Source: Macrostomum lignano (Eukaryota). From it: a stretch of 64,000 nucleotides of DNA. The notes under the pieces were generated by a model that worked only from the letters and a program-made list of their open reading frames with translations, ran no database searches and was not told the origin of the DNA. Positions 16,001 to 63,540 of the stretch are shown here, piece after piece. Every line of letters begins with the position of its first letter. The stretch's first letter is position 1. The position numbers were made by a program, and so were the translations under genes. Location: NCBI GenBank assembly GCA_002269645.1, contig NIVC01001366.1, positions 21,156 to 85,155 on the forward strand, in the 5' to 3' direction.

Positions 16001-17759
16001 TCGATGTGGCGCGGCTTGTCGATGAACTTCTCGATCAGCATGCGGTCGTCGCCAAAGCTGGACTTGGCCTCCTCCTGCGACAGCCGGTAGCCCTCGCGGG
16101 CCTGTTTGTCGTTCCAGGCGATGCGCATGCCCTTGCCGCCTCCTGCGGGGCGCGGCGAGGATCATTTCCTGGGATCTGACTGAGGGAGTTCCTGCGGATT
16201 CTGGTGGGCTATTTGTGGGGATTCTGGTGGGCTGTTTGTGGGGATTCTGGTGGGCTGCTTGTGGGGATTCTGGTGGGCTGTTTGTGGGGATTCTGGTGGG
16301 CTGTTTGTGGAGATTCTGGTGGGCTGTTTGTGGAGATTCTGGTGGGCTGTTTGTGGAGATTCTGGTGGGCTGTTTGTGGGCATTCTGGTGGGCTGTTTGT
16401 GGAGATTCTGGTGGGCTGTTTGTGGAGATTCTGGTGGGCTGTTTGTGGAGATTCTGGTGGGCTGTTTGTGGGGATTCTGGTGGGCTGTTTGTGGAGATTC
16501 TGGTGGGCTGTTTGTGGGGATTCTGGTGGGCTGTTTGTGGGGATTCTGGTGGGCTGTTTGTGGGCATTCTGGTGGGCTGTTTGTGGGGATTCTGATGGGC
16601 TGTTTGTGGGAATTCTGGTGGGCTGTTTGTGGGGATTCTAATGGGCTGTTTGTGGGGATTCTGGTGGGCTGTTTGTGGGCATTCTGGTGGGCTGCTTGTG
16701 GGGATTCTGGTGGGCTGTTTGTGGGGATTCTGGTGGGCTGCTTGTGGGGATTCTGGTGAGCTGTTTGTGGGGATTCTGGTGGGCTGTTTGTGGGGATTGT
16801 GATGGGCTGTTTGTGGGGATTCTGGTGAGCTGTTTGTGGGGATTTCGGTAAGGACTTTGTAGGGATCTTACTATAGATTCGTCTGTGCCCTTCGGTTGGT
16901 ATCTAACAAAGGCTGGAAATGATTAATTGAGCAGAGAAAAAGCAGCTCCAAAAATCCGGGAGAGTTTCTACGAAACAGCAAGAAATGCAAACTCAAGCAT
17001 TAAAAATTGAATGCCAACGCGTTTCGTCCAACAGACGTTTTCAGGACAGACAATCTTCACTTAATCAGCCATGTTCAATGCGTGCATTCAATATTTAGTG
17101 TTTGTGTTGACATTCCTCTCCAGCTCTAAGAAGCCGGGGCACTCACCGCCGGCGGAGGCCTTGATCATGACGGGGTAGCCGATGTCGTTGGCGATCTTGA
17201 CGGCCTCATCAGCGTCCTTGACCTCGCCGTCGAAGCCGGGGATGCAGTTGACCTTGGCCTTGTTCGCGATGCGCTTGCTCTCGATCTTGTCGCCCATGGC
17301 ACGGATGGCCTTGGAGTTGGGGCCCAGGAACACCACGTCCAAGTCCTCCAGGCGCTTGGCGAACACCGTGTTCTCCGACAGGAAGCCGTAGCCCGGGTGC
17401 ACCGCCTGGGCGCCCGTCTGCTTCACGGCTTGCAGGATGGCCTCCATGTTGAGGTAGCTCTTGCTGGTCGGCGCCGGCCCGATGCAAACGGCCTCGTCAG
17501 CCAGCTGGACGAACTTGCTGGAGGCGTCGATCTCGCTGTGGACGGCCACCGACTTGATGCCCAGCCGCTTGCACGAGTTGATGACGCGGCAGGCGATCTC
17601 ACCGCGGTTGGCGATAAGGATTTTCTCGAAGCGCGACTCGTTGCTGTCGTGCTTGTCGTTCCAGTAGATGGCCTCGGCTTGCCTGGCGGCAGAGTGCGAG
17701 CACAGGGTGCGCATGGCGACTGCGGCCGGGCCGCGGTGGGCGCTCAGAAGGCTCAGCAT
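13066..17759 (-). CDS. PCCA: Propionyl-CoA carboxylase alpha chain (biotin carboxylase + biotinyl domain), 4 exons, ~716 aa
   Basis: Exons 17759-17147, 16142-14902, 13956-13738 and 13143-13066 (613+1241+219+78 nt, in frame). Motifs [25 protein letters not shown]|[29 protein letters not shown] and the biotin site EAMKM. Confidence 0.96.
13205..13640. repeat. 22/23-bp minisatellite in PCCA intron 3
   Basis: Unit gactggccatgagactgattgtt(a), about 19 copies. Confidence 0.9.
13985..14922. repeat. 44-bp minisatellite in PCCA intron 2, made of the exon end plus 5' splice site
   Basis: Minus-strand unit CTGCAGTACCTGGGCACCAAG|GTGAGTGAGCTGTGTGAGTCAGT; about 20 full and 2 short copies. Confidence 0.95.
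16195..16845. repeat. 23-bp minisatellite in PCCA intron 1
   Basis: Unit tggggattctggtgggctgtttg, about 28 copies. Confidence 0.9.
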
Positions 17760-21050: not shown

Positions 21051-21320
21051 TCAGTTAGCCGGGTCGCCGGGCGCGGCCTGCTTGCCCGCGGCCACCAGCT
21101 CGTCCCGTTTGATGCGCGCCTCGATGAAGTCCACCTTGCGCTCCAGCAGCGTCAGCTTCTCGTTCAGCTGGGCGATCTTGCTGCGGCAGGACACGTCGAA
21201 CTGGTTCAGGAAGTCCGTCATGCGCTTCAGGGTGAACCCGATCAGGTCGATGTACTCCCGCTGGTTCCAGTCCAGCTGCACATCCTGCTGCACCTGGTCC
21301 ATGTAGTTCGTGTGCGACAT
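21051..21320 (-). CDS. BRK1: BRICK1/HSPC300, WAVE complex subunit, 89 aa, single exon
   Basis: VQQDVQLDWNQREYIDLI...DFLNQFDVSCRSKIAQLNEKLTLLERKVDFIEARI matches the BRK1 signature. Confidence 0.95.
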   Translation of the reverse strand: MSHTNYMDQVQQDVQLDWNQREYIDLIGFTLKRMTDFLNQFDVSCRSKIAQLNEKLTLLERKVDFIEARIKRDELVAAGKQAAPGDPAN

Positions 21321-21349
21321 GGCGGCATCGGACGGAGGGTTGGTGTTTT

Positions 21350-21945
21350 TACTGCTCCTGACACTGCTGCTCCTGACACTGCTGTTCCTGACTCTGCTGT
21401 TCCTGACTCTGCTGTTCCTGACCCTGCTGCTCCTGACTCTGCTGTTCCTGACTCTGCTGTTCCTGACCCTGCTGCTCCTGACACTGCTGCTCCTGACCCT
21501 GCTGCTCCTGACACTGCTGCTCCTGACTCTGCTGTTCCTGACTCTGCTGTTCCTGACTCTGCTGTTCCTGACCCTGCTGCTCCTGACTCTGCTGTTCCTG
21601 ACTCTGCTGTTCCTGACACTGCTGCTCCTGACTCTGCTGTTCCTGACACTGCTGCTCCTGACTCTGCTGCTCCTGACTCTGCTGTTCCTGACTCTGCTGT
21701 TCCTGACACTGCTGTTCCTGACTCTGCTGTTCCTGACCCTGCTGCTCCTGACCCTGCTGCTCCTGACTCTGCTGTTCCTGACTCTGCTGTTCCTGACCCT
21801 GCTGCTCCTGACTCTGCTGTTCCTGACTCTGCTGTTCCTGACCCTGCTGCTCCTGACACTGCTGCTCCTGACCCTGCTGCTTCTGACACTGCTGTTCCTG
21901 ACCCTGCTGCTCCCCTGACACTACTGCTCCTGACCCTACTGCTCA
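21350..21945. repeat. 15-bp minisatellite upstream of BRK1
   Basis: Unit cctgac(t/a/c)ctgctg(t/c)t, about 39 copies. Confidence 0.9.
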
Positions 21946-22480
21946 TTGCACTTGAGCAAGTTGCAACACCTGAACCTAAGCAGACTACCTTTCTAGTCCC
22001 AGATCTAAAGCTTTATGTAGCCTCGCAAAAGAAAACTACAAAAAACTGCAGGGTCTCCGCGCTTCTCCGGTCAAAGCATCTGAATTTTTACTTCCAGGAG
22101 TTGAAAACAAAATCAAACAACTGGGGATCTATACAGCAGAAGCTCCATTAGAATCAATAAAACAGTCAAAAGCTTTTGCTTCAAGCGATAAATAACAATG
22201 ACAAGAAAAAACAAGGCAGCACAGGCAATACGCTTTAACCGATCAGGACCAACAAGGAAAAAGGAGTGAAGGAAACAAACAACTGGCCTTATAAACACTA
22301 ATAATAGTCTATACTGGTATAGTTGTGTCCGCTCAGGCAACTCAAGTTGAGGTTTGAAAGGAAACAAACAGGCCTTTTGGCACAGCTACAGGAGGCCGGG
22401 GACCGGGACATTGCGGGTGCCAATTCTCTGTGAGCAGGGAGTGCTCGGCAGGTAAACAAAGAGCCAATAAGCAAACCGGG

Positions 22481-22633: not shown

Positions 22634-25600
22634 AGCTCCACCTCGGCCGTCTCAATCTCCATGGGCGGCACCGCCAGCGCCTCGGCGACGGGCCCGTAGT
22701 CGTACATCAGGCTGAGCGACTTTCGCCTGGCGGACAGCAGCGACAGGTCGGCGAAGAGGCCGGACAGCGGCACGGAGGCGGAGGCGGACACGCGGCACTC
22801 GTCGGTGGTGAGCGGGAAGGCGCAGGAGACGCCCGGCGGTGCAGGCTGAGCTGAGCGGTGCGCTCATTGTGCAGGGTGCGCAGGTTCAGCAGGTGCAGGT
22901 CGCAGGCGAGGCCGGCGGGGGGCGCCAGCGACAGGCGGGCGGGGACGCCGGCCAGGTCGGAGTCGGCAGCGAGCCTTGCGGAGGGCATCGCCACAGGCGG
23001 GTGCAGCAGGGAGTCCAGGCTGAGGGTGGCCAGGCCGCTGGGGAAGCCGAGGTCGCCGTCGGCGTCGGCGGGGCCGGAGGCGGCCTCCAGCAGCAGGCGG
23101 AAGGTGCTGGGAGTTGGCCGATTGTCGAGGACGCCCTGCGCCAGGCCGAGGCCATCGTCCTGGGCCAGGGTGCGGTCCAGGAACAGCTCCAGGCTGCCGC
23201 TGGCCGGGCTGTGCACCCCCATGGGCTGGGCCGCCACCACGGACAGGCGCACGCCGTTAGACTGCAGGGACGAAGGAAATTGTGCAAATGTACTTTTGCT
23301 GATCAGTCTTGGAGCTTGGATAGAACTAAAGGATTATGGCAACGCCTGGCCTGCTACTTTAAAAAACCCCCACTTGGGCTGATTTCACAGAGTGACGGTG
23401 ACTAATTGATAAGTGACAGTGACTATTTGACAAGTGACAGTGGCCATATGACAAGTGACAGTGATTATTTGACAAGTGACAGTGGCCATTTGACAAGTGA
23501 CAGTGACTATTTGACAAGTGACAGTGACAATTTTACAAGTGACAGTGACTATTTGACAAGTGACAGTGGCCATTTGACAAGTGACAGTGACTATTTGACA
23601 AGTGACAGTGACAATTTTACAAGTGACAGTGACTATTTGACAAGTGACAGTGGCCATTTGACAAGTGACAGTGACTATTTGACAAGTGACAGTGACTATT
23701 CGACAAGTGACAGTGACTACTTGACAAGTGACAGTGGCCTTTGACAAGTGACAGTGGCCATTTGACAAGTGACAGTGACTATTTGACAAGTGACAGTGAT
23801 TATTTGACAAGTGACAGTGACTATTTGACAAGTGACAGTGATTTTTTGACAAGTGACAGTGGCCTTTGACAAGTGACAGTGACTATTTGACAAGTGACAG
23901 TGGCCATTTGACAAGTGACAGTGACTATCTGACAAGTGACAGTGATTATTTGACAAGTGACAGTGACTATTTGACAAGTGACAGTGATTTTTTGACAAGT
24001 GACAGTGGCCTTTGACAAGTGACAGTGACTATTTGACAAGTGACAGTGATTACTTCTTGACAAGTGACTGTGACTATTTGACAAGTGACAGGGATTACTT
24101 CTTGACAAGTGACTGTGACTAGTGACAATTGTGACCGTTTGAAGAAATTTTAATTGAGCTACCGATGTATAAACAGTTATCAAATGCTGGAGACCAGACG
24201 GCAGCGGTTAGCTCTACCTGCATGAAGGCCTGGCAGGGCATGGGATACACGTTGGCCTGCAGAGGCAGCTTCTCCCAGTAGGTCCGCTTGGCCAGCTGCA
24301 GGCAGTTGATGTCCGAGTAGAAATTCCTCTGTCCGAGCCCGGTGTCCAGCCGCACGGCCACCTCCAGGTTGGAGTTGCCGCGCACGTTGGCGAGGCTCTC
24401 GATCTCCAGGCCGGCACCCTGCGCGGAGTCCAGGCTGGCGTACAGCCGCGTCACGGTGCGGGCGAACTGGCCGCCCCGGTGCACCTCGGACACGAGCGGG
24501 CCGGACACCCGGGTGACGGGTCCGGGCTGGTCGGAGGCTGGCCGGCCGGGCCCGTCCGGCAGGAACAAGTAGGCGCCGCTGCGCTCCCCGCCAGGCCGCG
24601 CTCCGTAGGTGTAAAACTTCACGTTCAGCGGCATGCGGCGGCCGCCCAGCTTTTTGTTGGTGAGGCCGGTGGGCAGGCCGCTGGTGGGGTCGAACTCCAC
24701 GCTGAGGTGCTCCGACTCCAGCGCCAGCTTGGCCGGCCGGCTGGCCGCAGCGAATGGGGCGGGCGCGGGCAGGGGGGCTCCGGCGCCGGTGTGGGCGAGA
24801 GCGGAGACGGAGAGGCTGGCGCTGGGGCCGCGGCTGACGGCCAGGCGGGTGAGGGACAGCGGCTCCAGACGCAGCAGCACGGCCACGCCGAAGCAGTCGG
24901 TGCGGATGTCCTTCCAGTCCGCGGTGAACTGCGGCAGCAGCTGAGCCGGCAGCTCCTTTCCTTCGTGGTCCTTGACAATCACCTGGGCGTCGTTGACAAC
25001 CAGCCGTATGACCTCCTTGCGAGCTCTGGCCAGCGGGTTGAAGATGACAACGTAGCGGGCGGCGGCGCCGGAACGGATGTCGATGACGCTTGGCGTCGGC
25101 AGCGAGTCGTGCCGGTCGCGGGACTCAAAGTCAGCCAGCAGCTCGCCAGCATCGGAGCTGTAGGTGGCGGGCAGCAGCAGGAACTGGGCGGAGCGGCGCA
25201 TCACCAGGCGGGCGCTGAACAGCGCGGCCAGCAGCTTCTGCCCGTAGTCTATGACCACGTGGTCCTTGGCTGTGCCCGTGATGCCGTCATGGTGCTGGAA
25301 GAGGCCCAGGCTGCGTCTGGGGTGCGGGGTGGCGGCGGGTCGTTTTGGTGCGCACATTTTATGGCAAGCTGGGGATTCTGCGGTGGTGAGGAGGGGATTC
25401 TGTGGTGGTGAGGAGGGGATTCTGCGGTGGTGAGGAGGGGATTCTACGGTGGTGAGGAGGGGATTCTGCGGTGGTGAGGAGGGGGTTCTGCGGTGGTGAG
25501 GAGGGGATTCTGCGGTGGTGAGGAGGGGATTCTACGGTGGTGAGGAGGGGATTCTGCGGTGGTGAGGAGGGGGTTCTGCGGTGGTGAGGAGGGGATTCTG

Positions 25601-39066: not shown

Positions 39067-39832
39067 TTTACACTCATAGGATATTTTTAGCGAAAATTAG
39101 ACTCGTTTGAGCTGGAAGATCTGGAAAGGTCTATAGCTAAAGTGCTCAAAATCACCAGACGTTTTTGCGTATTTTAAATTAAAGAGCTGCTCTAACGCCA
39201 GCAAATTTGCAGAGCATAACTAATAGGTAGAACATAAACTAAGAACGGTCTCGAATAGAGACGAGAAAACTGCGGTATCTTGCGTCAGAACCCGTCTACC
39301 ATTATTGTCCACAAATGGAGAGCGGACATGCATGTATTGAAGCGTGCTGTGCTGGAGATGTTCTCAGTGACACTGATTCACTCTAGTGCCCCTGCTCGGC
39401 TGGGATGTATTTAGATTCCGGCACAGACACGTAAATCTATGTAAAGCAGGATGATGCCAGACAGACTCAGTGTAAAGCCGCCGCTGTCATCTCTGTCCAG
39501 AACTCTTTTACCGTCAGAACACTTACAGAAGCCGATCCTGTGCCAAGCTGGTGCGTATGGAGAGATGGGTTTGAGGAGAGGACTGCCTGTTCTGCGTGCT
39601 CCATTGTTGCCTGTCAGGTACTGAAACAAACTGGATTGACTGGAGAGCTCAGAGGGACTCAGTTGGGATCTCTTACCATGTCCGTTGTGTGCCGTACATT
39701 GTACGTGTACGTTGGTGATAGATTGCTGATCAACCTGCTATTCGAGCGAGTCTGTCAGAGTTTAACTCTCGGCTTCGTACAGCGAACACCACCTGATACA
39801 GTGCGGTCCCTCGGTGGCCAAGTGAGGCCTCG

Positions 39833-40813
39833 GAGTGCAGGTAGGGATTCGGACTGCAGGTAGGGATTCGGACTGCAGGTAGGGATTCGGACTGCAGGTA
39901 GGGATTCGGACTGCAGGTAGGGATTCGGACTGCAGGTAAGGCATCGGACTGCAGGTAAGGCATCGGACTGCAGGTAAGGCATCGGACTGCAGGTAAGGCA
40001 TCGGACTGCAGGTAGGGATTCGGACTGAAGGTAGGGATTCGGACTGAAGGTAGGGATTCGGACTGCAGGTAAGGCATCGGACTGCAGGTAAGGCATCGGA
40101 CTGCAGGTAAGGCATCGGACTGCAGGTAAGGCATCGGACTGCAGGTAAGGCATCGGACTGCAGGTAAGGCATCGGACTGCAGGTAAGGCATCGGGCTGCA
40201 GGTAGGGATTCGGACTGAAGGTAGGGATTCGGACTGCAGGTAGGGATTCGGACTGCAGGTAGGGATTTGGACTGCAGGTAAGGCATCGGACTGCAGGTAA
40301 GGCATCGGACTGCAGGTAAGGCATCGGACTGCAGGTAAGGCATCGGGCTGCAGGTAAGGCATCGGACTGCAGGTAAGGCATCGGACTGCAGGTAAGGCAT
40401 CGGGCTGCAGGTAAGGCATCGGACTGCAGGTAAGGCATCGGACTGCAGGTAAGGCATCGGACTGCAGGTAGGGATTCGGACTGAAGGTAGGGATTCGGAC
40501 TGAAGGTAGGGATTCGGACTGCAGGTAGGGATTCGGACTGCAGGTAAGGCATCGGACTGCAGGTAAGGCATCGGACTGCAGGTAAGGCATCGGACTGCAG
40601 GTAAGGCATCGGACTGCAGGTAAGGCATCGGACTGCAGGTAAGGCATCGGACTGCAGGTAGGGATTCGGACTGAAGGTAGGGATTCGGACTGCAGGTAGG
40701 GATTCGGACTGCAGGTAAGGCATCGGACTGCAGGTAAGGCATCGGACTGCAGGTAAGGCATCGGACTGCAGGTAAGGCATCGGACTGCAGGTAAGGCATC
40801 GGACTGCAGGTAG
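39833..40813 (+). repeat. 19-bp minisatellite whose units carry CAG|GTAAG or CAG|GTAGG splice-donor consensus
   Basis: Units cggactgcaggtaaggcat and cggactgcaggtagggatt, about 50 copies. The array begins at ...ggagtgcag|gtaggg (39839/39840). Confidence 0.9.
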
Positions 40814-40854
40814 GGCCTTGGACGGCAGAATGGAACCTCCGCGTCATTCACAGA

Positions 40855-43800
40855 ATGGAAGGCAGCCCAGACAAGCAGATCCTCGCGGACGACGGGAAAC
40901 AGACCGCCGAGGTAGACGAACCGCTGACATTGCGGAAGTTCCCTCAGCTTTTCGTTAGTGGCTTTTGGCTCAAAAATGCAGCGAAACCAAAAGACCAAAC
41001 TAAACCAAACAAACCAAGCCTGAAATATTTCAGAAGAAATGAAGAGAGTTCACTTTTCACCTACGTCAGCGTACCAGCATACCCAATGTGCACACACCAG
41101 ACATTTACCCCTGCATGCGTTGAAATTATACCAATTTCCGTACCAAAGTAGGTGTTGGGACTCAAGTTTTAAACCAAATTTAAGGACAAATTCGTTTATA
41201 ACAAAAGCGCATTTCAATTAGACAAAGAAATTATCACAATCTTAATATTACGCTCGTATTTAGAGTAAAGAAAGAAAATTATCTGAGCATGGTCAAGGAA
41301 TAAAAAGAATTAGTTTAAATGCGTCAAATTTCCGTGAGTACCGCAAAAACGCACCGTTTTAAAAACTGCTTTGGCTTCGAACAATGGAAAGCTTGCTTTA
41401 TCTTATTTTCAGTTCGGGAGTTTCTGAGTTGTGCATGCGCGAACAGAAAGAATTGAGACTTGAAAAAAGGTTGAGTTTTTTCGAAGTTTTAATACTAATA
41501 ATTTAATTATTGATTACACCTGACCCAATGGGTAGCTGTGCAACCGACAGCTCAGCCGCAGCTATTGCGTCTATTTATTTATTATTCCATTATTCATTTA
41601 TTTATTTGAAGTTTTGTACATCCATAGCTGTAGCTCGTACAGAATTTATTTCTTTTGCGGTAAAATTTTGACCGCTAATTTGATTGTTCTATTCGCTTTT
41701 AAACATTGAACTATGCGTTGTTCGACGAATATCGTATCATGAACGAGAGTTAGCTATATCCAACATGTAATCGACAGCTTGAATCTAGCAGAATATGCGA
41801 CGATACTTGATTGAAATTCATAGGGCTCAGGGCTGTAACTTTTGCATACTAAAAATTAATTAATATACTAGATGAGATATAATTAAAACTCGCCTATATT
41901 GTCTGTTGTGTTCATCTTCTATATTTCTGTTGCCGCAATCTTTATGTTCCTTTGACTAAGGCTTATCATTTTTATCAATAAGCAGTCAAATATGCTAATA
42001 GAATTCATATGCGATTTGTTATTGAAATGGCAAACATTTTCATAAATCTATTGAAACTGTTAAAGCATCCTTCATAGCCCTGGCAATTGCTTAACTTTGC
42101 AGGAGGCTGAAACGCCACCTGACGCGGAGGCTGAAGCACAGCCTGAAGCGGAGGCTGAAGCACCACCTGAAGCGGAGGCTGAAGCATCGCCTGAAGCGGA
42201 GGCTGAAGCACCGCCTGAAGCGGAGGCTGGAGCACCGCCTGAAGCGGAGGCTGGAGCACCGCCTGAAGCGGAGGCTGAAACACCACCTGAAGCGAAGGCT
42301 GAAGCATCGCCTGAAGCGGAGGCTGAAGCCCCGCCTGAAGCGGAGGCTGGAGCACCGCCTGAAGCGGAGGCTGAAACACCACCTGAAGTGGAGGCTGAAG
42401 CCCCGCCTGAAGCGGAGGCTGGAGCACCGCCTGAAGCGGAGGCTGAAACACCACCTGAAGCGGAGGCTGAAGCACCACCTGAAGCGGAGGCTGGAGCACC
42501 ACCTGAAGCGGAGGCTGAAGCACCGCCTGAAGCGGAGGCTGAAGCACCACCTGAAGCGGAGGCTGAAGCACCACCTGAAGCGGAGGCTGGAGCACCACCT
42601 GAAGCGGAGGCTGGAGCACCACCTGAAGCGGAGGCTGAAGCACCGCCTGAAGCGGAGGCTGAAGCACCACCTGAAGCGGAGGCCAGCCCAGCAAGGTCGG
42701 TGTTGACTGGAGTGCTGCTGGACGTGTCGGGGTCGATGAAAGAAATCGTCAGCTCGGAGAAGGCTGCCGAGGCAGTGGGATACGTAGTTCGCGACAAGTG
42801 GATTCGCTCCATCTTCAGAGTTGCTGATCAGCTGATCGAGAAAGACGCACCGGAGGGGAGCCGCGTGTTTGCGATCGGCGTTGGAGCCAAGGATGAAGCG
42901 GAAGGCATTCCGCAGTCCCCAGCGGTCTTTGACATTCTCGCTTCGCTCGATGAAAGGAGAGCTGAAATCGAAGCCATCCGGGTGAGAATGCAGCGGGTGC
43001 GCGAACTGTGGCGGAGTTACCCCGGAAAGGTTGAAGTATTTGATGAAGCATTCTCCATACTAGAAAACGAAGGTGCGAAAGAAATCCGATTCTGGGGCAG
43101 AATGGACATCATCCACAAAGCTGTGGATCTCCACGTTGCATATCAGATTCTTGACCATCTCAAGACGGACGAAGACTTTCGGCATAAAATGGCCAAGGAA
43201 TTTCTTCCAGACGAATGTAGAAAACCTTCTAATAACGCGAGGAAAACCATAGCAGAATTTAATAGGCCTCCGAGTGTCTCAGATGAAGTGAAAAAAGCTG
43301 CTACAACAAATGCTGCGAAAGGTGTGATTGAGAAATGCAAAGTGTATTTAAAGAAGAGCCTTATTGACGAAGCCATTAAGCTTTTGGAGCAAAACGGAGC
43401 TCCCGATCTGAGTTCAGAACTCATGGAAATTGACATTGGCGAGATGGTCGACTTTGACACTGCCGCTTCAATTCTGAATCGACTTCGAAAGATTACAGAA
43501 TTTTTGGAAAAGGCTACCAACAAACTGATTCCTGAAGAATGTAAGAGACGTAAAAAATTGCAAGAATTCTCTGAGCAGAAAATTCAAAGCAATGTCAGAG
43601 AAAGAGCTGCACCAGCTCCAACATGGGCCACACTAGTGCTAATGCCAGCAGCTGCACCAGCTCCAACATTGGGCACACTAATGCAAATGCCAATAGCTGC
43701 ACCAGCTCCAACATTGGGCACACTAATGCAAATGCCAATAGCTGCAGCAGCAGTAAGAGGAGGAGTCCGTTGGATAATGCGGAAGTTAAGAGATGGAGGA

Positions 43801-45984
43801 CCGGCAGTTGAGGACATTGATTTTCACGATCTCTGCGAGTTTCATGAACACTTACGATCTTGTTCTCAGATTCCTATTACAGAAGAAGTGAAGATTTCCC
43901 TTATAAAAGAAGTGAAGACCGCGGCAACGAGTATGGCTGTACATAGAACCATTAAAGAACTCAAAAGGCTTGCGCAAAATGAATTGGATCATGAGCACAG
44001 GCAGGGACTACTTGCAGACATTGTAAAGGAAGCTATATTAATACTCGAAAAAAATGGTCCGCTAAAGCTGAGCGACAAGCTTGAAGAAATCGACTTTCAA
44101 AATTTGGTAACTCTGGATGCCGCCAAACAGATTTACAAGGCGCTCAATACCAATAATGACTTCCTGAAGAGTGTCGTGAACGAGTTCATTCCCGAGGAAT
44201 GTAAGAATCGCGACTCAGAAATGGCCAAGAGGGGATGGACCAAAGCCGAAATTGGAGCAACGGTAGGTAAAGTTGCATGCCTAGCCGGCGGTATGTTAAC
44301 CGGTGGAGTAGCAGCTGTGCCAATCGCAGTTGGAGCCGCCGCTGTTGTTCAATGTGCAGAGAAATCTACGGACAATCGTGTGAGCGAAGCCACAGAGGAG
44401 TCCGTCAGGGAAGTCGTACAGAAGTGCAGAGACTATATTAAAAAGAAATGGGAAAATCAGTTTCCACCTAAACAACTTCTTCACATGTCGCAAAAGTCCG
44501 TATTCAGTGCAAAGGAAGCCAAAACTATTCTGCGCTCCTGCGCCGATGGCGAGACGGAGCTGACGGATCAGGACATCGACGAGCTGGTGGAAGCCTTGGA
44601 GCCCTACATTTACGGAGGAACCCCGCTGATGGAGGCAATGTACAACTCGATTGATCTTTTTAAACGCCATGTCTGTAAAACACGAAAGAACGATAAACTT
44701 TTATTCGTTTTATCCGACGGCAAACATGCCGATTTAAAAAGGTTCGACCAGAAAGCTCTGTTGAAGCAACTTCAGGACGCAGAGGTCACAATTGTATCCT
44801 GCTACATTACAAAGACAGACATGCGTGAACCGCGTCGCCTCTACAGCTCGGATTGCGAGGAGTGGGAAAAAGCAGCGAAATTTATGTTCCACATGGCTTC
44901 GACAGTCTCCACCCAGAAGGTCCCCAGAACCCTGTTTACCCGAAAGGGCTGGACAATCGACACCGACAACAATGAGACCCGACTGTTCTTCCAGATCAAT
45001 CACCCCGACCTCATCGATGAGGTCTGCGACATCGCCAAGAGCTGCGTGTGCTCGCAGGACGCGCTGTCGGACGTGCTGGCCGACGTGGACCTCGACCTGT
45101 ACATCAACAGGGCCAACGAGGGCTTCGAGCCGCAGCGACAGTCGGAGCTCACCTGCTTTGCAGTCGCGTCGGCGACCGTCATGCACCTGAGCATGCTCAG
45201 GGTTGTGGGTCGGGACGGCGGATATCCGAACTTCTTCCAGCTCAGAGACGAGATCGTCGCTCAGTTCGGACAGCGCAGAGCCCGCACAGTCGAGGTGCTG
45301 CGGACAGTGTGTCCGGAGTACCGGCTGCAGTGCAAGGAGGTCGATGAGAGAGCCGCGCTGGACGCCGTCATCGCCAAGCAGCCAGTCGTGGCGAGGTTCC
45401 ACCTCACTAAGAGCGAGTGGGGCAGCTTCAAGCAGTTCTTCAAGCAGAATCCCGAAGGCATTCCCACAAAGTCGGAAATCGACATCAGCCAAAGACCCGT
45501 TGCACAGAAGACTTTCGGACACGCGGTGGTGCTGATGAGCTTCGACAGACACAGCCTGAGGCTGATGAACTCGTGGGGCTCCGGCTGGGGCGACGGCGGC
45601 TTCTTCAGAGTGCAGAGCGCAGCCGTGCTCAGGATGAAGTTCATCGATGTGTTCTGGACCGAGGAGCAGCTGACTGAGGCCGAGAGAGCCGCCTTCAAAG
45701 AGCGCGGACCGGGCGTCGCTGAAAAGCTGTTCGCCTCACTGAAGGGTCTGCAGACATGCAAGTACAGGTGCCCGCTGTGCAAAAGGGAGTCCCTGGTGTC
45801 GGAGTTCTCGGGACACACGCTGGAGGCCAGGTGTCCCAGGTGTTTGGGCAGCTTCAATGCGAACCTGGCGGGCAGCGACCTGGCGCTGAACCTGTACCTC
45901 ACCTCGCTGCTGCCCAGGAAAACTCCAGAGCAACCTACTCACAACACGCCCACAGGTGAACAGGAAAACCGTGAGCTTAAGTGA
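40855..45984 (+). CDS. ~1310-aa protein: (PPEAEAEA)n acidic spacer, split VWA domain with a large helical-repeat insertion, papain-like (C1/CA clan) cysteine protease and CxxC...CxxC Zn ribbon
   Basis: Predicted exon 1 40855-40911 (MEGSPDKQILADDGKQTAE|GTAGAC) is spliced in phase 0 to exon 2 42103-45984 (acceptor taactttgcag). MIDAS DVSGS at 42721, GGTPL at 44614 and LSDG at 44710. Protease Q/C at 45139/45154, GHAVV at 45517 and MNSWG at 45565. Confidence 0.8.
42103..42684 (+). repeat. Coding 24-bp repeat (PPEAEA(E/G)A) x~24
   Basis: Unit ccacctgaagcggaggctgaagca, in frame with the downstream VWA motif. Confidence 0.85.
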
Positions 45985-47054: not shown

Positions 47055-47480
47055 TTCACCTGCCCAGTTTACCTACTCAGTTCACCTGCTCAGTTTACCT
47101 ACTCAGTTTACCTGCCCAGTTTACCTACTCAATCTACTCAGTTCATCTGCTCAGTTTACCTACTCAGTTCACATACTCAGTTCACCTACTCAGTTCACCT
47201 ACTCAGTTCACCTACTCAGTTCACCTACTAGTTCACCTACTCAGTTCATCTGCTCAGTTCACCTGCCCAGTTTACCTACTCAGTTCACCTGCTCAGTTTA
47301 CCTACTCAGTTTACCTACTCAGTTTACCTACTCAGTTCACCTACTCAGTTTACCTACTCAGTTTACCTACTCAGCTTACCTACTCAGTTTACCTACTCAG
47401 CTTACCTACTCAGTTTACCTACTCAGTTTACCTACTCAGCTTACCTACTCAGTTCACCTACTCAGTTTACTTACTCGGTT
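47055..47480. repeat. 14-bp minisatellite
   Basis: Unit ctcagtt(t/c)acctac, about 30 copies. Confidence 0.9.
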
Positions 47481-48071
47481 TACTAGTTTACTAATTTACT
47501 AGTATTTTACGAAATACAAAACAGGCTCACAGCAGCTGTACATTGAGTATTTTATAATCTCCTGAACTCAAAATCGGCCGCATGATCTTCGACCGAAGAC
47601 ACAAATTTGTTGGTGCTTGAGTAATATTTCACAGAAATTCAAAAAAGCAGGATTTCGGATCAGCCACACGAATGAATTATGAAATATGAGTCGGATAAAT
47701 TAAAAAAAATGTTTTATAAAAGCAAGTCAAGGACTACTAGACGAAGTGGTCCTTGAAGCAAGTACTCGTATTGAAGTTAGTCGTCCTTTTATTTTGTCAC
47801 CTCAAAAGAATGGCAAACCCCACAATTATAAGCCAAATACAATTTCCGACAATAAAGGGTTTCTTGCTTCCAATAATTCCAGTTTTCTTTAGCTGTCAAT
47901 CTGGTAAGTTATCAAAACTATCGGAATAATGAGTGATTCACTTATAACTTCAATGAGAGCTAGCCTACAGCTGAACAGACTGGACTGCTAATGCAGCGAC
48001 CTGGGTTCGAATCTTAGTAGTGTATATAAAGTGTATAAAAGTAGTGAAATTTTCTTTTTATGCGCTTAATA

Positions 48072-49272
48072 AACCAAGGATTTCTGCACTTGATAAACCA
48101 AGGATTACTGCACTTGATAAACCAAGGATTTCTGCACTTGATAAGCCAAGGATTACTGCACTTGATAAACCAAGGATTTCTGCACTTGATAAACCAAGGA
48201 TTTCTGCACTTGATAAACCAAGGATTTCTGCACTTGATAAACCAAGGATTTCTGCACTTGATAAACCAAGGATTACTGCACTTGATAAACCAAGGATTAC
48301 TGCACTTGATAAACCAAGGATTTCTGCACTTGATAAACCAAGGATTTCTGCACTTGATAAACCAAGGATTACTGCACTTGATAAACCAAGGATTTCTGCA
48401 CTTGATAAACCAAGGATTACTGCACTTGATAAACAAAGGATTACTGCACTTGATAAGCCAATGATTACTGCACTTGATAAACCAAGACTTACTGCACTTG
48501 ATAAACCAAGGATTTCTGCACTTGATAAACCAAGGATTACTGCACTTGATAAACCAAGGATTATTGCACTTGATAAACCAATGATTACTGCACTTGATAA
48601 ACCAAGGATTATTGCACTTGATAAACCAATGATTACTGCACTTGATAAACCAAGGATTATTGCACTTGATAAACCAAGGATTTCTGCACTTGATAAACCA
48701 AGGATTTCTGCACTTGATAAACCAAGGATTACTGTACTTGATAAACCAAGACTTTCTGCACTTGATATACCAAGGATTACTGCACGGATTACTGCACTTT
48801 ATAAGCCAAGGATTACTGCATTTTATATACCAAGGATTTCTGCACGGATTTCTGCACTTGATATACCAAGGATTACTGCACGGATTTCTGCACTTGATAA
48901 ACCAAGGATTTCTGCAATTGATAAACCAAGGATTTCTGCACTTGATAAACCAAGGATTTCTGCACTTGATAAACCAAGGATTTCTGCACTTGATAAACCA
49001 AGGATTTCTGCACTTGATAAACAAAGGATTACTGCACGGATTACTGCACTTGATAAACCAAGGATTTCTGCACTTGATAAACAAAGGATTACTGCACGGA
49101 TTACTGCACTTGATAAGCCAAGGATTTCTGCACTTGATAAACCAAGGATTTCTGCACTTGATAAACAAAGGCTTACTGCACGGATTACTGCACTTGATAA
49201 ACCAAGGATTACTCCACTTGATAAGCCAAGGATTACTGTACTTGATAAACCAAGGATTTCTGCACTTGATAA
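48072..49272. repeat. 24-bp minisatellite (with 12-bp sub-units)
   Basis: Unit tgcacttgataaaccaaggatttc, about 50 copies. Confidence 0.9.
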
Positions 49273-52109: not shown

Positions 52110-53366
52110 TCATTTGTCTTTGCCTTCCTCGTCGTTTTCGGAGTCGCAGTCGCAGTCGCAGACGCTCAGAATTTGAACCAAAAGTGCATCGAAGAATGCT
52201 TTCTTAGTCGCGTCATCGAGCGGAACCGGAGCACCATTGATCTCGTCAGTCACGACGTCTCCCATCGGGATGTGCTGCCCAACTTTCTTGCAGTTGCCGC
52301 AACGCGCCACGGCACGAAACTGTTGGCCGTCATACTCGATGGTGATCATTCTGCAGGGAGCAGCACGCGGGTTGCCCCGGGCTTTGTGGAATTCATGCAG
52401 CGCGTGCTGCTCCGCGCAGCTCGGCTCACCTCCAGCCGAACCGCGGACTTTAGGCGCTCCGTTCGGGAACTTTTCGTTCAGCATCCGCTGTGTGGTTGCT
52501 TCCTCCCCTTGGAAGGGATCCAGGCGCTGTGCCTTCCGAAGGCGGAAGGAATAGCCGGTGTATGCGGTACCTTCCACATCGATTACCATGGCGCACTTGG
52601 TTCCTTTGAGGCCTTCGGGGCCAGATTTTACAGCTTCCTTCATCTGTAGAGCGACATGCTGGATTTCTCGGACAATGACATCTACCGATTCTGCGCCCGC
52701 CAGTTCGAGTTTTCCCTGGCGAACTGCCTCGACGATTTCACTCTTCATCTGTGCGTACGCAGCTCTTTTCGCTGTGAAATTCTCTACGGCCTTTGCACCG
52801 CGGTAACCTGCCACACCATCAAAAACAAACGTCACCACCCAGTCGAAGCCTTCTCCAGCTGACATTTTATTGTTGCGGAGTTGGTCTACTGCATGAAAGT
52901 GTCCGTACAGCCGCTTTTCGTCATGAAGAGCCGAATCAACTGCAGATATGATCCCATCCATTGCTGCTCCCCCAGCAACTCCTCCGGCAGCGGCTCCCGC
53001 GGGACCACAGGCAGCACAGCCAGCAATCCCACCTCCGAGAACGCCCACTGAACGCGAGGCCGCCTTCATGGCTTTGTCACCGCCCTCTCTGTCACCGAAT
53101 GCGTAATGGCCGGCACCTTTCACGTGGCCGAGAACTGGAACTGCATCGGCAAAGTCGGAAACTCCATGAATAAAGTAGAGTTGGGACTCTTTAGCAAATT
53201 CAGAATTACCGCTAGCAAGAGCGACAGTTGCCACAACCTGCGATACAACAGGGCAACCCTTGACAAAGTTTTTTTGTGTTTGCTTGGCACCTTCGGTGTC
53301 GCCAGCAATCAGCTGGACCGCACTTTTTGTTTGGGAGATTACCGGCAGGCTGTCTGTATTTCCCAT
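52110..53366 (-). CDS. 418-aa polymorphic-toxin-like protein with a C-terminal zinc-dependent nucleic-acid deaminase-fold domain (YwqJ-like)
   Basis: Intronless ORF. MGNTDS myristoylation motif; three PV(I/V/L)(S/G)(Q/H)...G(D/N)xE repeats; glycine zipper at aa 107-138; C317-A-E319 and C356-G-N-C359 followed by MGDVVTD. A 5'-UTR GT-AG intron is predicted at 53517-53420. Confidence 0.75.
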   Translation of the reverse strand: MGNTDSLPVISQTKSAVQLIAGDTEGAKQTQKNFVKGCPVVSQVVATVALASGNSEFAKESQLYFIHGVSDFADAVPVLGHVKGAGHYAFGDREGGDKAMKAASRSVGVLGGGIAGCAACGPAGAAAGGVAGGAAMDGIISAVDSALHDEKRLYGHFHAVDQLRNNKMSAGEGFDWVVTFVFDGVAGYRGAKAVENFTAKRAAYAQMKSEIVEAVRQGKLELAGAESVDVIVREIQHVALQMKEAVKSGPEGLKGTKCAMVIDVEGTAYTGYSFRLRKAQRLDPFQGEEATTQRMLNEKFPNGAPKVRGSAGGEPSCAEQHALHEFHKARGNPRAAPCRMITIEYDGQQFRAVARCGNCKKVGQHIPMGDVVTDEINGAPVPLDDATKKAFFDALLVQILSVCDCDCDSENDEEGKDK

Positions 53367-57196: not shown

Positions 57197-59350
57197 ATGC
57201 CGGATCTGACAAAGCCAGGCCGTCGAGAGCTGCTGCTCAGCCGGCTGCGGCAGCTGCTTGGCAGCTCCACAGCTCACGGTGTGAACAAGCTGGTGCAGCA
57301 GGACACCAACTGGACGGTGCGCGTGATCTGGTTCACGATCTTTGTGAGCGCCGTCTGCGGGGTGACGCTGCACACGGCCACCGTCATTCGCCTGTACTTC
57401 AGCTACCCCGTCAGCTCCACGGTGCGCCAGGAGGTCAACGGATTCGAGTTCCCGGACGTCACCATCTGCGACACCATGCTGAAGAAGTTCTTCCTGTACA
57501 ATGTGTCCCACTATGACCGGCGCACCGAGGACCGCGCCTTCAGCCGCTTCTCCCAGGTGGTGCAGACGATGTTGGGCTACCAGTTCGGCTGGGAGTCCAA
57601 GAAGTTCCTGAAGGCCACCTACACGGCCTCCGGCCACATGTTCAACATGTCTGAGGTCAGCGCCAGGGCACAGGACTTTGTGCTGTACTGCGAGTTCGAC
57701 CAGAAGCCGTGCAGTCACAAAGACTTCGTCCTGTACTACGACAAAGAGTACGGCAACTGCTACACCTTCCAGCCGGCGTCCAGGCAGCTGGAGAAGGCGG
57801 GAGCAGAGATGGGTCTCATCATGGTACTGTACCCGCCCTCAGTCGATGCGAACTTCGAGGAGGACCGCATCATGAAGACGGCCACAGGCCTGGAGAGCAA
57901 AGGCTTCCAGGTGACGGTTCATCAGCGCAACACGCGGCCGGACCCGCACGAGTTCGGCATCACCGCCCCGGTCGGCATGCGCACCGACTTCGCGCTGTCG
58001 CAGGCGAAGATCCGCCTGGCCAACACGAACACGCGGCCCTGCGCCCCGGCCGGCGTGCGCCGCTTCTGGAACCCCTTCCTCCGCCTCCACCAGGAGTACG
58101 AGGACCGCCTCTACAGCTGCGTGGAGAATGAGGACGCGCTGAGCCTGCTCAGAACCTGCCGCTGCACCATCGAAGGCCTGATACCAGCGGAGGAAAAACG
58201 CCTGCTGCAGGCGGATTACTGCCACGACATCCTCGACATGCGGAACTTCAACAGCAGCCGCTTTGCCAGAGTCTCCAACCTGGTGCTCAACATGTGGCGC
58301 ATCTTCTCCGAGGAGCGCAAGAGGAAGTACGCAGCCCTCATCGTCAAGGTGATCGGCGCCAAGATCATCGAGAAGTTTCCCGATCTCGGCGAGCGGCTCA
58401 ACCGGGCTGAGTGCGCTTACAACTTCTCGCAGAAGCAGAGCCTCTCTCTGTGCCTGAACGAGTGCCAGTACAGCGAGTACTCGTCCGCCATTGCGCTGGC
58501 CGAATGGCCGGACCGAACTTTCGCCAGCCGAGGCAGCCTCATCCGCATCAAGAAGCTGGGCAGCATGCTCGCCGACTACATCTCTGTGGTGGCGAACCTG
58601 ACGCCGCCTGCAGCTCTGGTCACTTCGCTGGGCATCTCCAATCGAAACGTGTCTAGCTGCCGGGAGGACATCCACCCCAACTACGACCCCGCGGCGCTGG
58701 AGGACACTGACTGCACGGACCTGCAGCGGTTCGTCAGCAACACGCTGGTGCAGGTGAGGGTCTACCCCAAGACGCTCACCGTGCGCCTGCTGATTGAGGA
58801 GCGGAGCTACGAGCTCGAGAAGCTCTTCTCAGACATTGGCGGCATCCTCGGCCTGTGGGTCGGCATCAGCGTCATCACCATCTTCGAGCTGGCGGAGATC
58901 GCAGTGCTGTCTGCTGCCTTCCTCTACAACCTTATCAACAAGCCCGGCGGCGCCAGCGGCCAGCAGCAGCCGCCAAACTCGTCACCCACTCGCCGGGTCG
59001 ATGAGGCACTCGAGGCTTCAGAACCGCCTCAGCGGCTGCTGCAGCGGCGAAGGCAGCGGCTTGACCCGCGAGATCAGGCCGAGTCACCGCCGCTGCTGCC
59101 ACATCAAAATGGCAGCCTTCTTCGGCATCAGCAGCAGCAGCAGCAACAGCTTCAGCCACAGAAGCAACTACATCAAGAGCAAAGCCAGCAACAAGAACAA
59201 CTGCTGCCGCAGAGGCAACAAGCAGAGCAAGAACAGCAGAAGAAAAAGCAGCAGGACAGCCAAGAGCAATCGCAGCAGCAACGGCGTCACGTGATGTTGC
59301 AGCAGCGGAAGGACATCTGTTTAAACTACGATATTGAGACAACGCTGTGA
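57197..59350 (+). CDS. DEG/ENaC/ASIC-family ion channel subunit, intronless, 717 aa with a polyQ C-tail
   Basis: STAHGV (HG motif), TM1 VIWFTIFVSAVCGVTLH, FPDVTIC, YGNCYTF, Cys-rich thumb and TM2 LFSDIGGILGLWVGISVITIFEL with a G-x-S filter. Confidence 0.93.
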   Translation: MPDLTKPGRRELLLSRLRQLLGSSTAHGVNKLVQQDTNWTVRVIWFTIFVSAVCGVTLHTATVIRLYFSYPVSSTVRQEVNGFEFPDVTICDTMLKKFFLYNVSHYDRRTEDRAFSRFSQVVQTMLGYQFGWESKKFLKATYTASGHMFNMSEVSARAQDFVLYCEFDQKPCSHKDFVLYYDKEYGNCYTFQPASRQLEKAGAEMGLIMVLYPPSVDANFEEDRIMKTATGLESKGFQVTVHQRNTRPDPHEFGITAPVGMRTDFALSQAKIRLANTNTRPCAPAGVRRFWNPFLRLHQEYEDRLYSCVENEDALSLLRTCRCTIEGLIPAEEKRLLQADYCHDILDMRNFNSSRFARVSNLVLNMWRIFSEERKRKYAALIVKVIGAKIIEKFPDLGERLNRAECAYNFSQKQSLSLCLNECQYSEYSSAIALAEWPDRTFASRGSLIRIKKLGSMLADYISVVANLTPPAALVTSLGISNRNVSSCREDIHPNYDPAALEDTDCTDLQRFVSNTLVQVRVYPKTLTVRLLIEERSYELEKLFSDIGGILGLWVGISVITIFELAEIAVLSAAFLYNLINKPGGASGQQQPPNSSPTRRVDEALEASEPPQRLLQRRRQRLDPRDQAESPPLLPHQNGSLLRHQQQQQQQLQPQKQLHQEQSQQQEQLLPQRQQAEQEQQKKKQQDSQEQSQQQRRHVMLQQRKDICLNYDIETTL

Positions 59351-62059: not shown

Positions 62060-62312
62060 GCAAAGCGCCTGCTGCAAGAGCCCATTGCACACACGAAGCG
62101 CCTGCTGCAAGAGCCCATTGCACACACGAAGCGCCTGCTGCAAGAGCCCATTGTACACACGATGCTGCAAGAGCCCATTGTACACACGAAGCGCCTGCTG
62201 CAAGAGCCCATTGCACACACGAAGCGCCTGCTGCAAGAGCCCATTGTACACGCGAAGCGCCTGCTGCAAGAGCCCATTGTACACACGAAGCGCCTGCTGC
62301 AAGAGCCCATGC
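62060..62312. repeat. 33-bp minisatellite
   Basis: Unit gcgcctgctgcaagagcccattg(c/t)acacacgaa, about 7.5 copies. Confidence 0.85.
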
Positions 62313-62644
62313 ATTGTACTCGTTCGGGCCGAACAGCCGCCCCAATGCGAATCCACCGGTGGGCTGGGGCGGTCACGCACCGCTCTCTGCCAGCTCTACA
62401 GATCTGTCTGCGGTAGAGTGAGAGAGCTCTTAATTAAAAATCCCGGGAGCTGGAGTCATTTCTGCTGCAATAGGTCTTGGAGTCAGGAAAGCAAAGTAAT
62501 TTCTGTGTTTTGGAAGGAGAGACGGACCAGAGGGCCGGAATTTTCCTGAGCTGAAATTATTTGTGCTTTGGCGTGCAAGTATGCGGCTCGTGCTATCTAC
62601 ATGTATCACCCTGTCCTCAGATCTAAGCAACTCCTCCGAATATA

Positions 62645-63540
62645 GACAAGCCTCCGAATCTAGACACCCCTCCGAATCTAGACACCCCTCCGAATCTAGA
62701 CACCCCTCCGAATCTAGACACCCCTCCGAATCTAGACACCCCTCCGAATCTAGACACCCCTCCGAATCTAGACACCCCTCCGAATCTAGACACCCCTACG
62801 AATCTAGACACCCTCCGAATCTGGACACCCTCCGAATCTAGACACCCCTCCGAATCTAGACACCCCTCCGAATCTAGACACCCCTCCGAATCTAGACACC
62901 CTCCGAATCTAGACACCTCTCCGAATCTAGACACCTCTCCGAAGCTAGACAATCCCTCCAAATCTATAGACACCCCTCCGAAGCTAGACACCCCTCCAAA
63001 TCTAGACAGCCCTCGGAGTCTAAACACCCCTCCGAATCTAGACACCCCTCCGAATCTAGACACCCCTCCGAATCTAGACACCCCTCCGAATCTAGACACC
63101 CTCTGAATCTAGACACCCCTCCGAATATATGGACACCCCTCCAAGTCTAGACACCCTCCGAGTCTAAACACCTCTGTCGTGTCGTGGCTGGCTAGCCAAA
63201 CTTGAGCCGCAAATGGGCGAGAGGTTGTTATTTATTGTAGTTGGCATTGCACATAGATGTACATGCAGATACGAGTAAAGCATCAGCTAATAGATTAGAC
63301 GGTTAGGCATAAGCGTACATTGACAGACAGAGCAGGCGGGGAGAGAGCAAGCAGTCCTAAACTCAGCGCCAATAACAATTGGGTGCAGCCCCACACTGCG
63401 CACTTCAAGTCAAGTCACGATACAACAACCTCTCCAAATCTATAGACACCCCTCCGAGTCTAAAAACCTCTCCAAATCTATAGACACCCCTCCGAAGCTA
63501 GACACCCCTTTAAATCCAGAAACTACTCCGAATCCAGACA
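62645..63540. repeat. 18-bp minisatellite in two blocks (62645-63175, 63430-63540)
   Basis: Unit cccctccgaatctagaca. Confidence 0.85.

Follow-up and report, generated by a model that had tools for sequence, protein, structure and literature searches.

The DNA analysed here, which we call the window, is a 64,000-nucleotide (nt) stretch of the Macrostomum lignano contig NIVC01001366.1 (assembly GCA_002269645.1, positions 21,156 to 85,155 of the forward strand), and all positions below are counted from its first letter. Its plus strand holds an uninterrupted reading frame of 1295 codons (42097–45984, stop codon at 45982–45984) that, judged by its sequence, is an intact gene of a Macrostomum-type flatworm for an intracellular multidomain protein. 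The gene is either intronless or has one 5′ splice, and it is an expanded member of a large, eukaryote-wide and uncharacterised family whose proteins carry a VWA domain, a papain-type protease and a zinc ribbon. We regard both its membership in this family and its domain anatomy as practically certain.

An exhaustive HMMER scan of 1.84 billion cluster representatives returned 1108 relatives at E ≤ 1e-3 and 214 at E ≤ 1e-30 (phmmer E-values went down to 6.6e-276), and an indexed search with the C-terminal 540 amino acids (aa) gave 454 matches at E ≤ 1e-5. A typical member has 660–720 aa (~680) with its parts in constant order: DxSxS near residue 10, the end of a helical module ([LIV]PxxC[RK]) near 145, GGTP near 255, the catalytic Cys near 430, His near 555, NSW near 570, and the two pairs of CxxC...CxxC near 640 and 660. 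The window protein fits this pattern collinearly (DxSxS-module-GGTP-LSDG-QxxxxC-H-NSW-CxxC..CxxC). In the family plan that we propose, the chain of a VWA domain of the metal ion-dependent adhesion site (MIDAS) type would leave the fold after its third strand, enter a helical module of ~65 aa and return through a partly hydrophobic linker into the rest of the VWA domain; directly after it come a papain-like peptidase with a complete Gln/Cys/His/Asn set, a long helix and a four-Cys zinc ribbon.

Named animal members come from Macrostomum lignano itself, Acropora, Montipora, Hydractinia, Owenia, the nemertean Tubulanus, Mya arenaria, Holothuria, the fish Coilia grayii, the tardigrade Paramacrobiotus and the nematode Panagrolaimus; others come from the chytrid Zopfochytrium, the ciliates Paramecium sonneborni and P. 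primaurelia, and the Rhizaria Leptophrys and Bolivina. The Coilia protein (P0194, on a 39-Mb chromosome-scale contig) is the only vertebrate among the named matches and is 53% identical over the C-terminal 540 aa, a region in which the non-flatworm relatives listed are 47–55% identical. The distribution is patchy, a point that an earlier note on this sequence had raised as a question, and the family is not confined to animals. A scan of viral contigs and of a viral structure library found no family member, only generic phage Peptidase_C1 folds. In their sources the relatives are called "uncharacterized", "VWFA domain-containing" or "Peptidase C1A papain C-terminal domain-containing" and nothing else, and our literature searches for the VWA/papain-like/Zn-ribbon architecture found no description of it.

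A divided VWA domain, a papain-like peptidase and a zinc ribbon

The VWA domain is encoded in two separate parts. The N-terminal half (aa 203–287, 42703–42957, plus strand) comprises β1, the first MIDAS residues (D209-x-S211-x-S213, within DVSGS at aa 209–213, nt 42721–42735), α1, β2 and β3; the C-terminal half, preceded by a return helix (aa 765–985 together, 44389–45051, plus strand), supplies T842 of GGTPL (44620) and D874 of LSDG (44716). The motif DxSxS...T...D is therefore complete, with its parts as far apart as the earlier note had placed them. Counted over the aligned relatives (183–257 sequences for all residues discussed here, 183–241 for the MIDAS), the five residues D, S, S, T and D are conserved in 97, 100, 97, 92 and 94%.

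Standard searches see little of this domain. A Pfam scan of the full-length window protein gave no VWA match; the C-terminal half alone scored 24.0 bits against VWA (PF00092; cut-off 23.8, model positions 61–153) and a construct with the insertion deleted scored 27.8 bits, while relatives reach E 4.5e-08. A PDB sequence search with the insertion-deleted VWA found nothing significant, and Foldseek against the PDB, which cannot bridge the insertion, placed no VWA in its top 50. Taken alone, Pfam matches on the window protein are thin evidence, here and for the domains described below, and it is the homologues, AlphaFold and Foldseek that strengthen the assignments; for the VWA domain, this support comes from the homologues and the AlphaFold model.

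AlphaFold, run on a 90-sequence alignment, gave a model with a predicted TM-score (pTM) of 0.65. Its VWA N half has strands at 2–8, 55–61 and 76–78 and a helix at 33–47 (model numbering), and the order of secondary structure is that expected of a VWA domain. The predicted local distance difference test (pLDDT) score is 77–97 over the N half and the first inserted module (77–93 in the VWA N half itself), except for a low-confidence loop at 22–29, and mostly 81–96 over the VWA C half, the protease and the zinc ribbon.

Evidence that the two parts belong together comes from two bacterial proteins with an unsplit VWA domain, to which we return below. The family hidden Markov model (HMM) matches these in two collinear pieces, HMM positions 8–68 on bacterial residues 7–73 (the N half) and 264–399 on 119–263 (the C half; E 6e-30 and 7e-28), with ~150 extra eukaryotic positions between them; in Pfam's terms, the first bacterial piece is the start of VWA_2 and the second is VWA positions 62–152. 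By this transitive homology, the window halves would be two parts of one VWA domain with ~150 residues inserted after the third strand. That they physically assemble into one fold is suggested by this homology together with the model: of the AlphaFold check that the earlier note had in mind, the confident core and the VWA-like order stand, while the joining of the halves is suggested only. The split itself is no peculiarity of the window gene: every family member has its VWA domain split by one module; what is special here is that the unit is tripled.

The peptidase (aa 1000–1190, 45094–45666, plus strand) was described in the earlier note as having an intact Cys/His/Asn set, and it does: C1020 (codon 45154–45156), H1142 (45520) and N1158 (45568), the last followed by SWG, are joined by Q1015 (45139). 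Fragments of the protein reach 20.9–21.6 bits with Pfam Peptidase_C1 (PF00112; cut-off 20.7), over model positions 120–204 only; the whole protein scores 19.3 bits, below the cut-off, and the relative P0152 matches with E 2e-11. A PDB sequence search with the whole protein returned low-complexity matches (eL29, circumsporozoite protein) from its PEAEAEAP array, along with weak papain matches. In Foldseek against the PDB, papain (1pad, E 1.8e-4) came first, followed by xylellain, ervatamins and cathepsins B, K and V, at probability 1.00; template modelling (TM) scores went up to 0.55, a value seen for ervatamin C and cathepsin K. As in papain, the model has C1020 near the start of a helix (816–833, model numbering) and H1142 in a strand (939–948). 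A deubiquitinase-type fold, which we had considered, was rejected, as the best Foldseek matches are C1 papains and cathepsins.

After a long connecting helix, the protein ends in a zinc ribbon (45667–45906 for both, plus strand), as foreseen, with its four cysteines in CPLC at 45769 (C1225, C1228) and CPRC at 45832 (C1246, C1249). AlphaFold predicts four short strands there (1021–1044 in model numbering, pLDDT 82–94), and Pfam Zn_ribbon_TFIIB matches weakly (E 0.075–0.12 in the window protein, 1e-3 in relatives). The four zinc cysteines are conserved in at least 99% of the relatives, Gln 1015 in 96%, Cys 1020 in 95% (with Ser in 3.5%), His 1142 in 99.6% and Asn 1158 in 98.7%. At the level of sequence, conservation of this kind is what marks a metal site and a thiol protease that selection has kept active, along with a zinc site kept for structure.

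The peptidase follows directly on the VWA domain, and no family member has an I29-type prodomain or a signal peptide. Among the 176 relatives that start with Met and align at the first MIDAS Asp, 161 have that Asp within their first 20 residues, which leaves no room for a signal peptide; together with the near-invariant zinc cysteines, this upholds the earlier view of an intracellular protein made without signal peptide or prodomain. We conclude that the peptidase is C1-like and not a classical cathepsin zymogen, since it lacks the C1A hallmarks, and that the family quite probably consists of active intracellular proteases.

The inserted modules and the flatworm paralogue

Between the VWA halves, the window protein carries three copies of the helical module. 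They were detected with an HMM built only from other species: R1 (aa 311–376, 43027–43224, E 1.9e-24) is the canonical copy, in which the family Trp (W333) and C374 are retained; R2 (aa 419–484, 43351–43548, E 1.3e-09) is a diverged duplicate; and R3 (aa 641–704, 44017–44208, E 2.5e-07) was also found by BLASTP against R2 and R1 (all plus strand). R2 and R3 both lack the conserved Trp. The three match one another with pairwise BLASTP E-values of 1e-7 to 4e-14 (for R2 against R3, 1e-14), so the modules that the earlier note had picked out by eye (43042–43224, 43366–43548 and 44026–44208) are homologous beyond chance.

R1 has pLDDT 90–97 in the full model, and when the module is folded alone, its six or seven short helices are confidently predicted to form a bundle (pLDDT 89.5). 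Confidence is low for R2 (pLDDT ~50–60), R3, a 45-nt minisatellite and a hydrophobic stretch, partly because the relatives are gapped there. The ~65-aa module has no known fold: Foldseek of the module alone found no match in the PDB (best E 6), and a search of the module profile against a protein database gave one short match only, so this search did not place the module outside the family. The CroV588 FNIP repeats and a designed helical repeat, which appeared when the profile was compared with PDB sequences, were rejected as artefacts of repeat composition.

The helix ahead of each module (DEVKKAATTNAAKGVIEKCKVYLKK; EEVKISLIKEVKTAATSMAVHRTIKELKRL) is similar to the one by which the chain comes back into the VWA domain (EESVREVVQKCRDYIKKKW), so the duplicated unit is larger than 65 aa and consists of a module, a linker and a return helix. 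In the window copy this unit has been duplicated twice, and two minisatellites have expanded, one in the insertion and one at the 5′ end. The former is an in-frame 45-nt repeat encoding AAPAPTLGTLMQMPI (43605–43751, plus strand; 3.3 copies with 93% matches by Tandem Repeats Finder, TRF), modelled as disordered with pLDDT below 50; the triplication seen earlier thus reflects a 45-nt tandem repeat, with AAPAPT at 43606, 43651 and 43696. The Gly/Ala/Val-rich hydrophobic stretch that had also been pointed out, GGMLTGGVAAVPIAVGAAAVV (aa 731–751, 44287–44349, plus strand), lies in the post-module linker, with pLDDT below 50 and a Kyte–Doolittle 19-residue mean of 2.03. The linker is present in every family member, usually with ~31 aa, and is strongly hydrophobic and Gly/Ala/Pro-rich in 17 of the 191 sequences scored, in which a comparable stretch (≥1.6) stands at the same position; this count includes the window copy.

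The earlier note had called the insertion variable, and this we cannot support. Mean pairwise identity is 37% in the module, 45–47% in the VWA halves and 54% in the protease; by these alignments, the module is a conserved part of the family, the least conserved of its ordered parts and yet far from hypervariable, and only the copy number and the linkers vary. Copy number, whose comparison across the family had been suggested, runs from one to four: 135 sequences have one module, 16 have two, two have three (the window copy and P0037) and one, Owenia P0005, has four. The MIDAS Asp and Thr lie 633 aa apart in the window copy, the maximum of 169 sequences (range 221–633 aa, median 252). The idea that the insertion acts as a gate on proteolysis seems to us unlikely.

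The closest relative of the window protein is formed by the first ~810 residues of another M. lignano gene model, P0001, 64% identical overall. This model (UniProt A0A1I8I0H8, 3511 aa) is named "ribonuclease H", and only its first ~810 residues match the family; the rest has the look of unrelated sequence joined on by a run-on gene model, which makes the name misleading for the family. The resemblance is uneven: identity is 92% over aa 923–1270 of the window protein (nt 44863–45906), from AAKFMFHMAST to the end, with a sharp boundary, versus 34–55% upstream of it, in the VWA N half, the modules and the beginning of the C half. The sequence mosaic suggests either that the effector stays constant while the sensor diverges or that the 3′ half has undergone gene conversion.

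Reading the function and the state of the locus

For the gene as a whole, we favour, at slightly better than an even chance, the reading that it is an expanded member of a family of intracellular cysteine peptidases that are controlled by VWA partners and take part in cell death or innate immunity. In this scheme the VWA metal site would bind an acidic residue of a partner or ligand, and the inserted module would contribute to the choice of partner or to self-association; binding or clustering would then position or release the attached protease, which would cleave cytosolic targets or itself. Some relatives would be recruited through Death or TRADD-N adaptor domains, so that some members at least would act in the signalling of cell death or innate immunity, and the proposed sensor-protease action would parallel that of bacterial VWA-effector proteins.

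Several observations favour a sensor-effector of cell-death or immune signalling: the adaptor fusions, the clusters of paralogues in corals, the bacterial VWA-TIR relatives and the P0001 mosaic. Death domains stand at the N-terminus of the relative P0024 (two Pfam stretches, E 8e-17), and in P0250 from Acropora a TRADD-like_N domain precedes the same VWA-protease core. In corals, paralogues are clustered in tandem, with eight distinct clusters on one 1.36-Mb contig, and adjacent intronless family copies occur at the locus L003. The flavour of conflict or immunity that the earlier note had sensed thus gains support, but this support is circumstantial (Death/TRADD-like_N fusions, coral clusters, VWA-TIR relatives), and we put an immunity or cell-death role, taken by itself, a little short of even.

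A number of points weigh against this scheme. Adaptor fusions are rare, with only three of 176 relatives having more than 40 residues before the MIDAS Asp (P0250 is outside that count), and the family has unicellular members as well (in Paramecium, Leptophrys and Bolivina), where Death-fold signalling is not expected, so that its role in the cell may be a more general one. In variability, the insertion exceeds the rest of the protein only moderately (37% versus 45–54% identity). The assembly of the VWA halves and the Cys–His geometry have pLDDT, fold matches and transitive homology as their basis, and our literature searches found no experimental study of any family member. The window copy itself is without its own ATG and loaded with minisatellites, and its expression is predicted.

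Such a general role is the substance of the strongest rival, in which the protein is a housekeeping or regulatory intracellular protease that is no component of immunity or cell death and that would process or remove a modifier or a class of substrates, with the VWA domain and zinc ribbon as substrate or partner adaptors. The breadth of the family (ciliates, Rhizaria, a chytrid, a nematode and many animals), the strong purifying conservation of all functional residues and the lack of an adaptor domain in most members speak for it. The window protein, too, has no match to a Death, DED or TRADD-N adaptor, only a (PEAEAEAP)n array N-terminal to its VWA domain, and neither PADLOC nor NCBIfam returned anything for this eukaryotic protein, including any defence model. 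Set against this are the patchy distribution, the tandem lineage-specific expansions in corals, the existence of Death and TRADD-like_N fusions, and the Foldseek preference for C1 papains and cathepsins over deubiquitinase-type folds. On balance we find a housekeeping role somewhat unlikely.

A second rival accepts the function of the family and denies it to this locus: the window copy would be a decaying or non-expressed paralogue, its start codon lost to a minisatellite and its insertion swollen by internal duplications and repeats. It draws on the 5′ end, where the first in-frame ATG of the reading frame is the one inside DVSGSM, with none earlier upstream of the MIDAS motif. P0001 has a Met nine residues ahead of the conserved RSVLTG; the window copy has at this place, where the paralogue reads MKLERHVRSVLTG, a 24-nt minisatellite (42102–42683, plus strand; TRF, 24.2 copies with 91% matches) that reads (PEAEAEAP)n in the frame of the gene. 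The coding status of this array is uncertain: several frames on both strands are open across it, so the open frame there is not evidence of translation. The crowding of the window with minisatellites, the largest insertion in the family and the loss of the conserved Trp from R2 and R3 could all be signs of decay.

There are two ways in which the gene might obtain a start. A candidate first exon put forward in the earlier note (40855–40911, plus strand; 57 nt or 19 codons, ATG..GAG followed by gtagac) might be spliced in frame to 42103, with the donor CCGAG/GTAGAC at 40911/40912 and the acceptor ttgcag/GAGGCT at 42102/42103, both read from the sequence. A trans-spliced leader ending in ATG, joined in frame at 42102/42103, would explain the start equally well, and the Macrostomum spliced leader probably has an ATG at its end (PMC10468722). 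This AG acceptor at 42102, in frame with either source of an ATG, is one argument against a dead copy; others are that a stop-free frame of 1295 codons persists in a repeat-rich genome, that all MIDAS, catalytic and zinc residues are intact, and that other phyla also have multi-module members. We consider a decayed or silent copy very unlikely.

The remaining two alternatives can be dealt with briefly. Secretion is the usual context for C1A peptidases and for many animal VWA domains, and a secreted or lysosomal cathepsin-like enzyme with an adhesive VWA domain would agree with the C1-like sequence and fold and with the hydrophobic stretch; the absence of a signal peptide and I29-type prodomain, a VWA β1 that starts at the N-terminus, the invariant zinc-ribbon cysteines and the presence in some members of Death or TRADD-like_N domains, which are cytosolic, make it barely credible, and we rejected a secreted cathepsin. 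Equally close to negligible is the idea that the reading frame is two genes or a fusion artefact (a VWA gene and a separate protease gene), for which the run-on look of the closest UniProt model, P0001, and as the only other point the unusual length can be cited: the frame is continuous in the window and the same collinear architecture recurs in over 150 independent sequences of many phyla, often on a single uninterrupted reading frame, so we rejected this too and read one protein, as the earlier note had done.

The window contains further minisatellite arrays at 4771–5763, 7133–7750, 16238–16759, 21242–22151, 23385–23852, 39825–40828, 47065–47483, 48061–49272 and 62085–63099. Window minisatellites make long spurious open reading frames (ORFs) in several frames on both strands, so ORF length alone is unreliable here. 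By Pfam, the window also holds an ASC channel, an ANCHR-like protein and a kinase exon; apparent exons of propionyl-CoA carboxylase alpha and alpha-mannosidase II were recognised by eye only. Taken with the P0001 match, this gene content points to a Macrostomum genome. The channel gene (57197–59350, plus strand) is a single exon for a 717-aa ASC/DEG/ENaC amiloride-sensitive channel (Pfam ASC, E 1.9e-60) with a Gln-rich C-terminal tail. On the minus strand, a 418-aa ORF (52110–53366) starts with MGNTDS, which is myristoylation-signal-like, and includes a hydrophobic stretch rich in Gly and Ala, GVLGGGIAGCAACGPAGAAAGGVAGGAAMDG, that recalls the one in the VWA insertion; in its C-terminal region, CAEQHALHE ... 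CGNCKK looks by eye like a zinc-deaminase motif, and the ORF had no significant match in Pfam, the PDB, PADLOC or NCBIfam.

Relation to known systems and significance

A scan of 185,579 prokaryotic species genomes found just two relatives, in metagenome-assembled genomes of Lysobacterales (L001, 4647–5963) and Holophagales (L002, 4650–5888). Both proteins (410–440 aa) have an unsplit VWA domain followed by a TIR domain resembling that of Thoeris ThsB, and they may represent an undescribed small defence-type module; at L001, a 404-aa ORF with no Pfam match precedes the gene. Their VWA domain is homologous to that of the eukaryotic family over both halves and shares the motifs LLVDVSGSM, GxTPMLEAF, KILFVLSDGxPTD and VVSCYVTD..RRLYS. 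They differ in having ~50 aa where the eukaryotic proteins have ~200, a TIR effector in place of the papain-like peptidase, and no zinc ribbon. The logic of an N-terminal VWA domain and a C-terminal effector is common to the window protein, to these two and to the prokaryotic vWA-effector conflict proteins (Kaur et al., eLife 2020; PMC7159879). The prokaryotic vWA-MoxR ternary conflict systems (Kaur et al., 2020) have an adjacent MoxR AAA+ ATPase and a third component, VMAP/iSTAND, whereas the window gene is eukaryotic and monocistronic; at the bacterial loci, ORFs within ~2 kb were listed and one neighbour was scanned with Pfam, with no systematic look for a MoxR partner.

Among eukaryotes, the closest published counterpart is a set of cnidarian DED-TRADD-N-vWA proteins, described as lineage-specific expansions in which TRADD-N is fused to a C-terminal vWA domain (Kaur, Iyer, Burroughs & Aravind, eLife 2021; PMC8195603). 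Given the Acropora relative P0250, with its TRADD-like_N domain before the VWA-protease core, these are probably the same family seen from the adaptor end. The main text of that paper names the region a vWA domain only and mentions no split VWA domain, inserted module or zinc ribbon, and its single use of "papain" refers to a different protein. The window protein differs from this set in having no adaptor domain.

With the papain/cathepsin family (MEROPS C1, PF00112), the peptidase shares the fold (papain, ervatamin, xylellain, cathepsins B and K), the canonical order Gln, Cys, His, Asn and the NSWG motif at the Asn. It differs from that family in that its Gln lies five residues before the Cys (six in papain), that it is embedded without signal peptide or prodomain in a cytosolic multidomain protein, and that its match to the Pfam model, at threshold level, is confined to the C-terminal half of that model. 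Among known C1 enzymes that are not secreted, the cytosolic bleomycin hydrolase (C1B) comes nearest as a precedent. Functional analogies are offered by CLCA, in which a protease and a MIDAS VWA domain share one self-cleaving chain, and by MALT1, in which a Death domain and interaction domains accompany a Cys/His protease activated by clustering. Neither is related in sequence, and both differ from the window protein in domain order and in protease fold, which is zincin in CLCA and caspase-like in MALT1 and the paracaspases.

A bolder version of the scheme would make the family a class of cytosolic proteases, eukaryote-wide and so far unrecognised, that are activated by clustering and correspond, with their papain fold, to the caspases, paracaspases and metacaspases; the module and the hydrophobic Gly/Ala-rich linker would be a ligand- or membrane-sensing switch, Death and TRADD-N domains would plug the protease into animal cell death, and changes in module copy number would retune sensing; this we hold to be distinctly unlikely.

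The window copy is mainly of interest as an extreme of module expansion. The family to which it belongs carries no functional name in the databases examined, yet it is large, conserves every functional residue and occurs in the tractable organisms Macrostomum, Hydractinia and Paramecium, so that one biochemical study would annotate hundreds of genes. If its members are indeed active proteases under the control of their VWA domains, a papain-fold enzyme would join the few regulated intracellular proteases of eukaryotic cell-death and immune signalling, and a sensor domain held in common with bacterial VWA-TIR proteins would be another direct bridge from prokaryotic conflict systems to eukaryotic immunity.

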